Assembly (NCBI GenBank): GCA_904063045.1
Contig: CAJFCJ010000007.1
Span: 1,867,404 to 1,931,403, forward strand
Source: Dimorphilus gyrociliatus
Lineage: Eukaryota > Animalia > Annelida
Direction of reading: 5' to 3'
Length of the DNA stretch: 64,000 bases
Of the stretch, positions 22,842 through 30,825 are shown one piece after another. The notes below the pieces were generated by a model. The model saw only the letters and a list, made by a program, of their open reading frames with translations. It was not told where the DNA came from and made no database searches. A program made the position numbers and the translations under genes. Every line of letters starts with the position of its first letter. Position 1 is the stretch's first letter.

Positions 22842-24317
22842 ATGAATGCTATATTATTTTTTTGTGTATTTATTGTCGTTCCTTTGACATTATCTGTATG
22901 GTTCGCTAATGTTTATTCTTATGTTTTTCATGAGGGTTCAGGTGTTGCACCTGCGTCACCATTTAGGGTATGTCTGGCCATCCTTCTACCTATGATAATC
23001 GTTCGTAACGGTCTGAAAAAGAAAAGTTTAGGTACATCTGGAGCTGTAGGGAGTCTCATAGTCGGTTTTATAATGACAATTAGCAATTATTGTTTTATGG
23101 CTGCACTCCTTACATTTTTTTATCTTGGCTCAAAAGCCTCCAAATTTCGAGGTTCCATAAAAAAATCTTTTGAAGATGATTTCAAAGAAGGAGGCCAAAG
23201 AACCTGGATTCAAATTGTATGTAACGGTGTTGTTGCCACACAGTTGGCGTTATTCTATGTACTTGAAGAGGGGTGTTCTGAAATAATTATTGACTTTAAA
23301 AATAAATACACAAGCTCTTGGTTAGCTATTGGTGTTGTGTCTTCTTTGTCATGCTGGTAGGTTGGTACTTTGGAGACATCCAAAAATTTGTTATGTTCTT
23401 TTTATAGTTGCGGAGATACTCTAGCCTCTGAGATAGGAAGTGTAATGTCATCTAATAGTCCTCGACTTATTACAACATTTAAAAAAGTTCCTAGAGGCAA
23501 GTGACATCATATATCATCTTATATAACATTTTAATTTTAGAAATTTATTAGGTACCAATGGGGCTGTGTCTGTTATTGGATTAATCGCTAGTGCATTAGG
23601 TGGTAGTCTAGTTGGTTTGGCCTATTACATTGCCATTTTACTGACCAGCAATTCAAACGTACTTCGAAGTGGACCTAGACAATACTATGTAATTATTGTG
23701 TCCACTATAGCCGGCCTCTTTGGCTCTCTTGTAGATTCCTTACTGGGCGCTACATTGCAGTATTCAGGTATGAGTTTACGAATTAGTTGTATATCAAAAG
23801 CGTTTCTCTTCTCATCTTGCTAAGCAAAAAGAGTTTAGAAATGATTGTAAACTTTGTTCTACTTTCAGTTCATTTTTTCTTTTACATTCAAAATTATTCT
23901 GAATTTAGAATGAAACTATGATTCGACTTTATTCTTTTCAAAAAATATTTATACTAACTTAATATCAACTGAAATATAGAAAAAAGTCAACTTTTTCATT
24001 TTACTAGATGCTTTTACAGGTTTCTATTTTTGAAGCTTGTTAATTTCAATTTTAGTACTCTTCTGTTCATTTCACCGGATATCCGCCAAGAAATCTATTT
24101 TCATTACTAAATGCAATTTCACGTTTCACCATCTTAATTTTCAAAAATATTTTTAGGAGAAGACTTGACCAATGGTAAAATTGTATCCGTTCCGACTAAG
24201 AGGACTAGGCATATATGTGGTCTATCAATATTAGACAATCATGCCGTTAACTTACTTTCATCTCTTTTAACTGCCTTGGTAATTCCTTATACTGCTTTCT
24301 ACTTGTGGGCCTCTTAA
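22842..24317 (+). CDS. TMEM19: Transmembrane protein 19 (DUF92), 4 exons, intron 2 is GC-AG
   Basis: KEGGQRTWIQIVCNG, GDTLASEIG, GTNGAVS, GSLVDSLLGATLQYSG and LDNHAVNLLSS. Confidence 0.93.
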
Positions 24318-24859
24318 TGTGAATGAATTCAACTGGAAGATAATTTGACAAGAGAATAACTGTTCAATGGTATTTGGATTGTAAAGTAAATTTTTGCAAA
24401 CTGTTTGAAGTGTATACTTTTTCAGTTATCTTTTTATTACAGTATTGGTGATGTCTGTATGAAACACATCTATTTCAACTTGAAAAGTCTTTTATTTATA
24501 AGGACTGTTGAAAACTATCAATTCAACACTGAGGATAGTTTGTACCTAACCGGAAAAACTTTCTAAATACTAAAACAGAAATGTACAATTTCAATAGGTA
24601 TGCACTTCTAAACAAACTGTACGCGTACATTCGACAATGACATCTACCTTATTTTCTGCCTTTGAGTCAGTTGATAAGAATTTAGACGCCATCTGCATTA
24701 GTTTATAAAAAGAGATTTTCAAGTGGTATAGGTTTTCCCATGTGTCCTTGACTCAAGGTCGAATTTCAATCAATTCTTTCCGCGTGTCGCCTAACCGCTA
24801 ATCGTATTTATATGTAAATGCAATGGAAAAAAGCACTAAAATGTCTTAAAAAGTAAGAT

Positions 24860-25849
24860 TTAACCACTAAGTCCATCTGTTTCCCTCCTTTGTGGTTGCT
24901 TGACCACATTCCTACTTCGACATCGGCGGTTAGCAAACCAACAAGAAATTTGCGATTCTTCCAAGCCTGTTTCTTGGGCTAATTTTTTTTTATCGGTGGC
25001 ATTCGGATATGGATGAGTCGTGTGTTTGATGTACCAATCGTGAAGGATTTCAACAGCTTGTCTCGGAAGAGAATATTTTCCTCCTTTTCCTCGAGGAGCA
25101 TTTAATTTTAATCTGCCTTCATCCCTAAGTGTACGAATTTCTTGTATCTTTTTCAATTTTCTAGGATGTAGAGAGCTGTTAAAAGGAAGTGTATTATAGT
25201 TGCGAACTCTCCGATTAGCAAACCACTTCTTGACCTGTGAAAGACGGATTCGAGCTCTTATGGCAATTTTCAACATATCGTTGTGAGTAGGGTAGGGATA
25301 ATTAACGTTCTCCTCATACCAGGCCTTCATCAGCTTAATCGTTTCTTCACTAAAGAACTGACGTCGCTTTCTTCTACAAAATAATTCTCCTTCTATATCT
25401 TCTATTAGATAGATCCTTTCCAAACGATAGTGACCATCTACCGCGTTTTTCATTACAATATTCTCCTTGGCTAAAGTCTCAATCGCTTCCTGATTTTCTC
25501 TTTGTAATTTATTTACCTGTAGTCGGTAAGACACGGTAAGCTTATCATTTCCAGCATCGGTCAAGAGTCGAATCAATCTCTCTTCATTCTGTCGTATCAC
25601 ATTTTCGTTTATTTCTTCATTAATTGGAAATTGCACATGATTATTATTTAATATCTGTTTTCTTTCGCCTTCTGACCGAGATCGAATGGTTAAGTCCAAC
25701 GGGCAATCATTAATTATATCTTTTAATTCGCTATTGTCTTGATTGTTTTCTTCTAGACCAAGTAGACTTTGAACTGTAAAGGAACGATACTGACGTATTC
25801 CAGTCTGCAAAGCACCGTTCATGTTTGTGTCTATTTTGAGAATAGACAT
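24860..25849 (-). CDS. Intronless TALE-class homeobox protein with two homeodomains
   Basis: HD1: ENVNYPYPT...VKKWFANRRVR. HD2: KHTTHPYPN...ISCWFANRRCR. Both carry the TALE PYP loop. Confidence 0.9.
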   Translation of the reverse strand: MSILKIDTNMNGALQTGIRQYRSFTVQSLLGLEENNQDNSELKDIINDCPLDLTIRSRSEGERKQILNNNHVQFPINEEINENVIRQNEERLIRLLTDAGNDKLTVSYRLQVNKLQRENQEAIETLAKENIVMKNAVDGHYRLERIYLIEDIEGELFCRRKRRQFFSEETIKLMKAWYEENVNYPYPTHNDMLKIAIRARIRLSQVKKWFANRRVRNYNTLPFNSSLHPRKLKKIQEIRTLRDEGRLKLNAPRGKGGKYSLPRQAVEILHDWYIKHTTHPYPNATDKKKLAQETGLEESQISCWFANRRCRSRNVVKQPQRRETDGLSG

Positions 25850-26508
25850 TCGCTATGTTGGTCGGTTTCGAAGTTTTTACGTGGTCTTAACTATTAAGGA
25901 AAGTTTTTAAACTCTCTTTGCTCAATCAAAATCAAGAAGCAAGTCGGCATTGGGCCCGCCTAGTTTCTACCTTTACACAGAGGTCAAGTTGAATGTTTGA
26001 CAATCTTAAAGCGATTATTAGGGGTAATTAAGCCCCTGATTGCAGCAATTGGCGCCAAACTATCAGTCAGTTTGTCCGAATATCAAAGCCGTGGATTGTC
26101 GGTGTAGATTTACTATTACGCAATTTTTTTGTTTTGCCTTTAGCGCTGAAATGATACGTAACTCATTTCATAACGAAGGTTTCATAACGGTAATGGCGTT
26201 CTAATGGTAATGGCAACACACGATGCTAAATCAATGGACCGTAAACTAACGAGATGACGTGTACAAAGTTGAGATTACCATTATAATCTGACAAGTAGGT
26301 CGGACAGCTTTCATTGTAAGTAGGCGGAGTATTCTCCTAGTTTCCTTGAATCCGAATTTTTTATTTATTTAGTAAAACATATTGATAAAGATAATTTATT
26401 TGAAAAACACTATCAGTCTTACTCAGATTTATAATTGCTCAGATCGGCACTTGGCGCGCTTCCGGCGTCCTGGAAGGATATAAACGCCAGCGACAGCAGC
26501 TAAACAAC

Positions 26509-27206
26509 ATGTCGACATTGTCTGCTAACGAAACTTTACTTCTACAGCAAAGTGTAAAAATAGAAAATGGTGTCTATAAAGTTCCAAAAAAGATCCAAAC
26601 CTTGGCTCTTGAATTAAGACGAAAATATTGCCCCTTCTCTGAGAAGAAGGAAGGATTTTGTAAAGCCATCTGGGATGGAATAGTTTGCTGGCCGTCTGTT
26701 AAAGCGAATAAGACGATTGAATTAGCTTGTCCTGAATACATTGATGGATTTCGCGTAGATGGGAATGCAAGTAAAACATGCGATGAGAATGGTGAATGGA
26801 AAATTTACCCCTCACTCAATTTTTCACACTGGACAAATTACTCGTTATGCACAGTTGAAAAGGGTCTATGCGAAAAGAAGATTTTCGTAAGTGAATATTA
26901 GCATTATATACTGACTAATAGTAATTTGGAGTTTTATTTAGAATATATTAACTCCTATTCAAGTCATCTCTAATTCTGGTTATACAATATCGCTAATTTC
27001 GCTGGTATTAGCAGTCATTATCATGCTTCTATTCAGGTAGGAACATCTGAATATAATGTTAAAAAAAAAGCTAAAAAAAGCTGCTTTATTACAAATATGA
27101 TGTAGGATATCTTGAATATTGTTGATGAAATTTTTAAATTATAAATGTTGAATGAATATATGAAATATACATATATAATAGTATATACAGTACAGTATAT
27201 ATTCAG

Positions 27207-27248
<42 letters not shown>

Positions 27249-28421
27249 TAATCCTCTTAACAGAACAAATTATCACAAATCTTTATAAATCATGTTTTGT
27301 TTGTAGAAAACTACGTTGTTCACGGAATTGGTTACACATTAATCTGTTCATGTCTTTTATTCTGCGAAGTTGCATGACTCTCCTGAAAGAGCAACTTCTT
27401 GTTGAAGGTGTTGGGTTAAAGTCGGATGTCGAATATGACGAAAAGAAAAAGGTTTACTTCAAAGACGATTCTACGGTATTCACTTTTATTGCTTCCTATT
27501 TTCGCATTAACTAATTAGCTTTTAAAACTAGCATTGGCAGTGTAGGCTACTGTTTTCCATTTTTAATTACGCATTGGCATCTAATCATGTTTGGATTTTC
27601 ATCGAAGGTCTATATTTACATAAGTTACTTTTCCTTTTCGTATTCTCTGAATCAAAATCTGTAAAATGGTATGTTTTATGCGGTTGGTTTACCCCTCTTC
27701 TCTCTATCGTACCGTGGATTTGCGTAAGATTTTATCTGGAAAATGTTTTGTAAGTATCTTCCTTTAATCTATTATAATTTTAAAAACGCCTGTGCTTTGT
27801 ACTGTATCTAGTCAATAACATGTTATTGCAATTATATTCTACTAATTTTATACTGCACAATAATAACTTATTATTTTTAGGTGCTGGAATACACATCCAA
27901 CGGATTCCTACTTCTGGATACTGCAAGGCCCATTGGTAGCTCTCGTAATAGTTAACTTTGGCTTTTTCGTAAACATTCTACGGGTTCTTTTTTCTAAATT
28001 AAAAGCAACTAATTCGGGAGAAGTAAAAAAATATAGAAAGCTGGCAAAATCAACTCTAGTGCTCATTCCTCTGTTTGGTGTACATTACATAGTTTTTATA
28101 GGTTTAACAAAAGATGCTTGTAACATCCTCCCACAACCTCACGGCTATCATGTTGAAGTGGCAAAATTATTTTTCGAAATGTTCTTTAACAGTTTCCAAG
28201 GGCTAATTGTATCAATTTTGTTCTGTTTCGCAAATGGAGAAGTTCAAAGTGAATTACGGAAAGTATACGTTCGATTTAGAACCTCTGGTAGGATCTCAAG
28301 GAACGTAAAAGGCGATTCTTGTACTATTTCATCACTACAATTCGATAACTACAACAACAAGAAACAAACGAACCACTTGAAAGTTGCCGAGCACGTGCTG
28401 CTAATTGAAAGCAAGCTATGA
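26509..28421 (+). CDS. Class B (secretin family) GPCR, PTH-receptor-like, 5 exons
   Basis: Hormone-binding domain C...WDGIVCWP...CPEYI...C...G.[67 protein letters not shown]. Confidence 0.93.
27208..27244. repeat. (TA)n microsatellite inside a GPCR intron
   Basis: Direct reading. Confidence 0.9.
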
Positions 28422-30825
28422 GAGATAGAATATTACAAAATTAAATTAAAATCGAAAAAAGAGGGAAGAATATTATAGGATGTACACGCATATTGCAAAA
28501 GTTTGATACGTATTTTTGCTGTCAAACCTGTCTAAAAGCGGTATTTTAATAGGAGTCCTATATATGTACAAATAAAAAAATGAATAATCATAAATATAAA
28601 TATATGTACAGTATTCTATATATGTATTGCATGACGGAAAAGAAATAAGTGTAATAATACATTCAAGTAAGTAAAGCAATTGAATACACAAAACATGAAT
28701 AGTTGTATAATGAAAAAGTAATAAAAGTTTTATCATGACAACTATAGACAAATTAAATCTTCAATCTTCCTTTTATTTTATTGTCAATGAAAACTTGCTT
28801 CCAGCAGATGGTCTTCTGTATTTTGTTGTGTTACGCTTAATCTTCACAATGCTAACGTATTACCTTAAGCGCAAGATGGCGTGCTTTTTTATATTAAGAT
28901 TTGCTGTCGTTTATTGTATGAAGATAAACAAGGGAGCAATGAGAAAAAAAGAGGGGAAATTGTTGTATGTACGAAGACATAATGCTAACAAAATTGATTA
29001 GTATATGAACAACGGCAGCAACTCCAATAAAAACGCGTTGCTGCAGAACGCTTGCACAGCTAATGGTCTTCTTAAAGGACTCTAATAAACTTTTACTGCG
29101 AAAAAGTATCAATACTAAGGTGTTATCCATCATATTACGAACGGGCTCTATATTAATAGCATTATATCTAAATTAAAGATAAGGAATTCTCGTTTTTGAT
29201 TTCCTTATCGAAAACCCATCTGACGAAACTAAGTTAATACTTATACTCGTTGCTTCAATATGTACCAACTCAATAGCTTTTAGGAAAACCTTGTTAGTAC
29301 AAAAAGTAGTTTAGTTTAATATTTCCCTTAAAAAAGACTTGTCATTACCTTTTGGCAAACGTATAAATTAAATGCTCTATTCTCAGTATAAGAAAAAATT
29401 ACGATTTTACTATGATCATAGTATGCTGTCCATACACACACGAACCTATCAAATATCTTTAAATTCCATTTCTATACGCAGATGACATGTTTATATTCCG
29501 ATATTAAGAAACAAGTTTATTTATTTTTTTATTAAAGATCTTATCTCTAATTAAATTTGAAACCAGTTGAAAATGTTTGCTGTAATATATTATTTTTAGA
29601 ACTAATGTTTTTTCCACCTATTCCATCGTAGGCCTATTACAAGCACAAAAAATCATGAAATATGATAGAGAATGTAAACTTATCCAAAGATTGTTAAAAA
29701 TGGATAGTTTCCTTTATACTACTGCCTCGAAATTTCAAGTTAATTTTTAGGTATATATTGCTATAAATAATTAAGAACTAAGCTATACGTCTATTTTCGG
29801 ATCAGACTAGTAGCCTCATATTTTTTCCCAAACTAATTAGTCTAAATGCACTAGAATAGTATTCGTACGTAAATAAAAATACAGGATTATTATTATGGTT
29901 TATTAAGGAATTGTGATTAAAAAAATAATAGAATAGCTACCTGTTTTTTTTGTTTTTTTAGAAAAACAAAGCATCAAACGTTATTTCAATTGAAAAGAAA
30001 ATATCGTTCCCAATGAAGGACGAATTCCATATGATGAAATAATGGTTCAATTTTGGTTTATAAGAGAAACATATTATATACTATACAATTATAGTATATT
30101 TTCACTATGACTCCATCCATAACTGTAGAATTGTATTTTTTCTTTACTTTTTAAAATTTTTCAATAAGGTAAATGATATCAACATTAGGTTTATCAATAG
30201 AAAAAACCCAGCCCTTCTAATAGTTTAATAAACCACAGATTGAGGACAAATTCAGTCTCTGTTATTTTTAAACTGCAAGAGTTGTAAGAGGAAAAAGATA
30301 GGTAATTTGATAGTAAGTATCGAGTTCTCTCAAGAAAGACTGACAGAGATTGCACTAGATGAAAGTATAACTATATGAGTAAGTGAAAGTAAATGATTTT
30401 TAAAAGTATGATATTAAAAATATAGTATTAAAAATTTTATATGGTCTAATAGATGTAGAGGTATGTTGTTTTGTAATTTCAGGTGGATGAGAGAAAAGGA
30501 ATCATTTTTCAATAAACTATCATTACTCATGTTAGTATTTGCTAACAAATAAAGATCCGCTTGTAAGAGATTAGCGTACATAGTTTTAAAAAGAATAGAT
30601 TGTCTAAGATATTCTTGCATCAAAGATTTAAATTTAATAACATAGACATGTAAAACTTTCCTCTACTTCTCTATAATTCTTTCTCATTTCGTTGACGAAA
30701 ACTGTGATAAATTTTCGTTTTTTTTTTAAATTCGATTTCGAGAAGATGAAATTCAATTTTTTTTAAAAGAAGAATTCTAAAAAAGGACCGATTTTTACTT
30801 TTTCTGCAGTTTTATATAAATATAC

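Follow-up and report, generated by a model that had tools for sequence, protein, structure and literature searches.

The minus strand at 24860..25849 of the window (the whole 64,000-nucleotide stretch of Dimorphilus gyrociliatus DNA that was analyzed) carries a single unbroken open reading frame that starts with an ATG and comprises 329 codons, followed by a stop at 24860-24862. No other frame of at least 50 aa overlaps this interval in the ORF listing of the window. The orthologue in a second species shares the start methionine, and its end point lies no more than three codons away, so the frame can be taken as the whole CDS on one exon, and dN/dS values (see below) agree. The CDS is therefore intronless, as an earlier reading of the letters alone (the sequence-only reading) had stated.

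Two TALE homeodomains are encoded, both on the minus strand and both found by Pfam, genome scan, family profiles and tree. HD1 (aa 159-221, 25187..25375) has a YPYP loop and the C-terminal end RVRNYNTL, and HD2 (aa 254-316, 24902..25090) has an HPYP loop and the helix 3 sequence SCWFANRR. Pfam detects Homeobox_KN (E 4e-25) and Homeodomain (1.7e-18), each in two stretches of the ORF, with aa 272-311 as the best stretch for HD2. The corresponding genome scan matches are C7:1892605-1892724 for HD1 and C7:1892320-1892439 for HD2. Both can be aligned gap-free to TALE homeodomains of 63 residues, which places them in the TALE superclass. In standard numbering, W48, F49, A50, N51, R53 and R55 are kept in both, with R5 in HD1 and K5 in HD2, while the specificity positions 47 and 54 differ (K and V in HD1, C and C in HD2). 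The two complete homeodomains with PYP loops, WFANRR and Ala50 described by the sequence-only reading are thus visible in the translation, and Pfam agrees. Its statements that they diverge from each other and lack MEIS, PBC or IRO boxes also held: HD1 and HD2 are only 29% identical, and PBC, Meis_PKNOX_N and IRO gave no Pfam match in the ORF even at E up to 1.

The linker between the homeodomains is 32 aa long. It begins with a motif specific to the family (aa 222-243, PFNSSLHPRKLKK..., 25121..25186, minus strand), recognized by alignment and profile search, in which a helix is predicted at aa 229-243. At the other end of HD2, the C-terminal tail is short (aa 317-329, 24860..24901 on the minus strand with the stop): 13 residues follow HD2 here and 10 in the orthologue, versus 17 to ~100, mostly 40-55 and including a conserved block, in the relatives discussed below. 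This conserved post-HD2 ("blue") region is absent from both the query and its orthologue.

Upstream of HD1, two regions can be distinguished. The N-terminal region (aa 1-90, 25580..25849, minus strand) is weakly constrained, with a dN/dS of 0.56, and no relative was found to align to it. Next comes a PADRE-like helical motif (aa 101-157, 25379..25549, minus strand), which abuts HD1 and was delimited by hhalign, dN/dS and AlphaFold. The upstream motif of 14 annelid-type relatives matches the query by hhalign with an E of 2.7e-4 alone and 5.9e-5 when the orthologue is included, a weak match with a probability of 41-65%. Judged by eye only, aa 101-157 is similar to the published PADRE alignment over the C-terminal half of the latter. 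No Pfam family corresponds to the N-terminal motif of the relatives. An upstream exon of a paralogue on contig C6 matches the same profile columns better (E 1.9e-7, hhalign). BLASTP of the query N-terminus against that exon gave no match, the similarity being found by profile comparison only.

The AlphaFold model, built from the family alignment, has helices at 78-98 and 102-158 (pLDDT mostly ~90, 60-70 near residue 158), two three-helix homeodomains and a linker helix at 229-243. It is mostly of low confidence over the N-terminal region, with a pLDDT of 39-60 per 10-residue block over aa 1-80. The pTM is only 0.35, so the model gives no information on domain packing.

Searching 1.8 billion representative proteins led to 4503 matches. 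The best single-stretch matches cover both homeodomains and the linker in register (query aa 160-318, E 1e-29 to 1e-35, ~40% identity), and two TALE-like homeodomains are present in 96/162 of the database proteins examined. Across 41 signature-bearing relatives and the orthologue the linker measures 17-54 aa, a range that includes the length found here. Published genes (Supplementary file 8, PMC6118893) were tied to database proteins through 12-residue words (n = 3): both TALE-IV homeodomains that the published alignment gives for Patella vulgata recur word for word in P0034, and words of Pinctada TALE-IVA.1 and Crassostrea TALE14.1 were found in P0038 and P0052. Since these three proteins carry words of published genes, the matches can be equated with the published TALE-IV family. 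According to Barton-Owen et al. 2018 (PMC6118893), a pair of TALE homeodomains is present in most TALE-IV genes. Each B-clade SPILE gene likewise has two (PMC8524836), and the features listed for SPILE clade B are "two homeodomains, modified PADRE domain" (Morino et al. 2021, Table 1, PMC8524836).

The family signature extends beyond the homeodomain folds. In the published alignment, inspected by eye, the ending [KR]RVRxxNTL occurs in TALE-IV first homeodomains only, and the query has RRVRNYNTL; V215, R216, N219, T220 and L221 are invariant in the 26-sequence family alignment. The consensus that follows HD1 is SFNGSxHPKKL, with H228 and P229 invariant in the 26 aligned members. From its position, the post-HD1 motif probably corresponds to what Fig. 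4 of PMC6118893 shows as the "green" region. For this post-HD1 stretch, a profile of 35 positions, built without dinophilid sequences, detects the locus with an E of 3.4e-12 (32/35 positions) and the C6 paralogue with an E of 6.8e-10. No other significant locus for this profile was found in the whole 78-Mb genome.

The homeodomain phylogeny proposed by the sequence-only reading as a check was carried out on 64 rows, without the other published SPILE clades and without Tgif or Mkx homeodomains of this genome. This careful tree replaced a first, quick tree of 233 homeodomains that was mostly unresolved (131/230 branches open). HD1 falls, with modest support (80/78), within a clade of all 22 TALE-IV first homeodomains, nested in a starred group from which the genome's own Pbx, Pknox, Irx and TALE-I homeodomains are excluded. 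HD2 groups with annelid A-type second homeodomains (92/92), which have TCWFAN, as in the TALE-IV A genes of Capitella, Platynereis and Spirobranchus. The A-type group can be called annelid because one A-type cluster contains a Lamellibrachia protein. In a tree of the whole two-homeodomain unit (146 columns), the gene lies in a non-mollusc group (90/85), with the mollusc genes as a starred clade. Its branch in this tree measures 1.57 changes per site versus a median of 0.34, four to five times the median, and identity to the homeodomains of any relative is at most 43-46% (HD columns 1-56). The placements of both homeodomains agree with TALE-IV, but the AU test on the few (63) homeodomain columns gave a p of 0.11 for the alternative in which HD1 and HD2 are sisters. 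As sisterhood is not rejected on homeodomain columns, the argument for a shared origin of the pair depends on the profile scores and on the motif between the domains.

Internal duplication of a homeodomain has reportedly been proposed for Helobdella TALE-XIX A, and the same could be imagined here, namely a distinct, lineage-specific TALE gene in which internal duplication produced the second homeodomain and which only resembles TALE-IV. The AU result would allow it, as the 63 columns accept a clade of the four dinophilid homeodomains at the same p value, and the long branches and missing post-HD2 tail also fit. However, the low identity between HD1 and HD2 speaks against such a duplication, and each homeodomain fits the family profile for its own position better than the other profile. 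Once the signature columns are taken out, HD1 scores 73.9 bits on the TALE-IV HD1 profile versus 68.0 on the HD2 profile, and HD2 scores 82.8 bits on the HD2 profile versus 62.3 on the HD1 profile (preferences of 5.9 and 20.5 bits, respectively). Moreover, the inter-domain motif lies outside the homeodomains, is common to the family and is nearly unique in the genome, and the linker length is that of the family. We consider an independent duplication improbable.

The gene is preserved in a second species. The orthologue, encoded in three public assemblies, is 327 aa long and 77% identical, and its locus shares the same neighbors, being flanked by a head-to-head gene for a secretin-type GPCR (HRM domain) and, at the opposite end, by DUF92 and TAF12-like genes. 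In two annelids and Patella, these flanking genes were not found at distances of up to 6 kb from the relatives' genes. Compared with the orthologue, the whole-CDS dN/dS is 0.17 (NG86) or 0.19 (YN00), at a dS of ~0.8. Regional values (NG86) are 0.05 for HD1, 0.04 for the linker, 0.10 for HD2 and 0.115 for aa 91-158, with the highest value, that of aa 1-90, given above. The gene is real and maintained by purifying selection, which is strongest on the homeodomains and the stretch between them.

These data bear on the possibility, raised in part by the sequence-only reading ("possibly retroposed"), that the locus is a retroposed copy or a decaying pseudogene whose frame is open by chance and which evolves neutrally. 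The intronless CDS and the relaxed aa 1-90 would be expected of such a copy. Against it, the low overall dN/dS and the 0.04-0.10 range of the homeodomains and linker, at this dS, together with a syntenic orthologue, indicate that the gene is not decaying; the orthologue has an intact frame with the same start in the same gene order. A homeodomain pair on one exon is also normal in the relatives. P0012 (632 aa) and P0013 (730 aa), both from annelids, are single ORFs over their full length, and in Patella one exon encodes aa 144-582, a stretch with both homeodomains, so the missing introns can be accounted for without retroposition. No closer parental copy was found in the genome by genome scan or profile search, the only paralogue being the B-type gene on C6. 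The retrogene reading was rejected on these three grounds (one-exon relatives, synteny with the second species, no closer parent), and the broader alternative of a neutral copy, already largely refuted, is very improbable.

The locus is also represented in RNA. In a spliced RNA assembly (single run, unstranded), whose contigs skip the GT..AG introns of the neighbors, one contig spans 24155-26315 without gaps. Also present on this contig are the last exon of DUF92 and spliced GPCR exons, both of which are plus-strand. The locus is thus transcribed, and the contig is compatible with the plus-strand neighbors as well as with the TALE gene. That one RNA contig extends over window positions 24155-28500 would fit either transcripts of the three genes that overlap on each side of the TALE gene or plus-strand read-through across it. 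A separate RNA contig of 321 bases (23864-24184) looks like a retained DUF92 intron.

That the protein is a divergent member of a canonical class (PBX, MEIS/PKNOX, TGIF, IRX or MKX) is already refuted at the available resolution and has next to no likelihood left: the closest solved structures are MEIS, TGIF and PBX homeodomains (E ~1e-10 for HD2) and Ala50 is present in IRX and MKX too, but no PBC, MEIS or IRO domain accompanies the pair, identity to the canonical homeodomains of the genome is 23-38%, and the genome's Pbx, Pknox, Irx and TALE-I homeodomains lie in a starred clade that excludes HD1 and HD2, which is the opposite of the nesting in a canonical class that the sequence-only reading had named as refuting.

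Taken together, the in-register two-homeodomain relatives, the post-HD1 motif, the trees and the purifying selection bear out the proposal of a spiralian-specific, SPILE-like TALE gene. We conclude that the locus very probably encodes a functional TALE-IV / SPILE-B member, most likely the A-type copy of a dinophilid annelid, shortened to 329 residues. The gene is a fast-evolving addition to a described family, not a new class or clade; where the sequence-only reading spoke of "a novel or fast-evolving clade member", the unit-tree branch supports the second adjective, and the first does not hold for the clade, which is the published TALE-IV / SPILE-B. No description of TALE genes in D. gyrociliatus was found among the papers searched, which include the genome paper (PMC7854359).

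The known members closest in kind are Nipponacmea SPILE-B, Crassostrea TALE7/8/14 and the TALE-IV A and B genes of Capitella, Platynereis and Spirobranchus. The query shares with them two homeodomains in one chain and on one exon and the RVRxxNTL end of HD1 followed by NGS-x-HP-KKL; its HD2 has the CWFAN helix 3 of the annelid A type, and its upstream helix is weakly PADRE-like. The query differs from them in size (329 versus 500-900 aa): full-length relatives carry the helical motif 70-150 residues upstream of HD1, with a serine-/proline-rich spacer between, and both this spacer and the post-HD2 region are gone. Helix 2 of its HD1 is unusual, and position 52 is R instead of K in both homeodomains. 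The post-HD2 "blue" region has diverged in some TALE-IV members (PMC6118893). As this region is diverged in some members and not all members keep both homeodomains, its absence reads as a derived loss and does not exclude the gene from the family. The spacer and tail of the relatives would then have been lost in the dinophilid gene, which fits the compact genome (78 Mb, with introns of 51-131 bases).

The second two-homeodomain TALE-IV gene of the genome, the C6 paralogue (G000:C6:3182859-3183316, locus L011:1052-1797), resembles the gene in its two TALE homeodomains, in KRVRNCNTL followed by SYNGS, and in a PADRE-like exon upstream (L011:591-926). It differs in that its HD1 groups with B-type relatives (98/86), its HD2 is of another type (HWFTNRR), an intron interrupts the post-HD1 motif and at least one more lies upstream. 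Its exons were left unjoined, and its two homeodomains entered the tree as separate rows.

The wider TALE complement was surveyed in 30 loci fetched from the genome. These include three Irx homeodomains within 17 kb on the gene's own contig (G000:C7:1067984-1084500), two TALE-I, and a single homeodomain each for Pbx, Pknox and Meis; neither Tgif nor Mkx was found in this set. About nine further non-canonical TALE homeodomains occur in long open frames of the genome. To our knowledge, TALE-IV is the only TALE group with two homeodomains. Among the database matches, P0004, P0005, P0006 and P0008 are made up of six to eight TALE-like homeodomains placed back to back over 439-622 residues, and another ~40 have three to five. 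Multi-homeobox TALE genes were unknown before TALE-IV (PMC6118893).

Both HD1 and HD2 retain the DNA-contacting residues known from solved TALE complexes. The protein may act as a sequence-specific transcription factor that recognizes two different half-sites lying side by side, one through each of its linked homeodomains, with the conserved 32-residue linker holding HD1 and HD2 of one chain on neighboring half-sites. The best-understood model of a homeodomain pair reading two adjacent half-sites is the mammalian PRD-class protein DUX4 (6e8c and 5z6z on DNA), which likewise has two divergent homeodomains and a short linker in one chain. DUX4, however, belongs to another homeobox class, lacks the three-residue loop and has an independent origin, and the sequence match to it is limited to helix 3, so the likeness is mechanistic, not familial. 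The PBX-MEIS and PBX-HOX heterodimers also place two homeodomains with differing specificity residues on neighboring half-sites, but they pair via PBC and MEINOX domains on separate chains, whereas the query is a single chain with neither domain present.

As candidates for lineage-specific regulators of spiral cleavage, SPILE/TALE genes rank first. By analogy with the SPILE genes of limpet, mussel and Spirobranchus, the gene might have a zygotic function in certain blastomeres during spiral cleavage, and an early zygotic role like that of its SPILE-B relatives is our best guess. SPILE-B is expressed in the second-quartet cells of the limpet and in mussel 2d, and the SPILE genes of Spirobranchus are staggered along the animal-vegetal axis (PMC8524836).

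For the TALE-IV / SPILE-B member described here, the core maintained by selection would be the two-homeodomain unit and the inter-domain motif, the spacer and the C-terminal region being dispensable. Genome compaction left both the gene and one paralogue in place. Being compact and encoded by a single exon, the gene is a candidate for binding and structural work; it leaves the current picture of TALE evolution unchanged. A more ambitious version, which we regard as unlikely, is that of a naturally minimized two-homeodomain TALE factor, in which the PADRE-like helix is fused directly to HD1, the C-terminal region is lost and a bipartite site is read as by a built-in "heterodimer", the gene perhaps being co-regulated with the divergent GPCR gene via the conserved block described next. 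If this were true, it would be the most tractable protein for the study of SPILE DNA recognition and blastomere specification.

Finally, a conserved non-coding block (25961..26280, no strand assigned) separates the TALE gene from the divergent GPCR gene, with ~88-90% identity to the orthologous locus. The RNA contig traverses it and is spliced at 26315/26443. Farther on, 26421-26520 is 99% identical to the orthologous locus, compared with the dS of ~0.8 in the CDS, and the intron at 26316-26442 and the stretch 25850-25960 show no conservation. The block is probably a 5' UTR exon of the GPCR gene and/or a shared promoter. Among its words are the repeated CCATTACC and GTTATGAAA, a TAATTA near-palindrome at ~26021-26040, a TGTCAAAC word and a TGTCA core.
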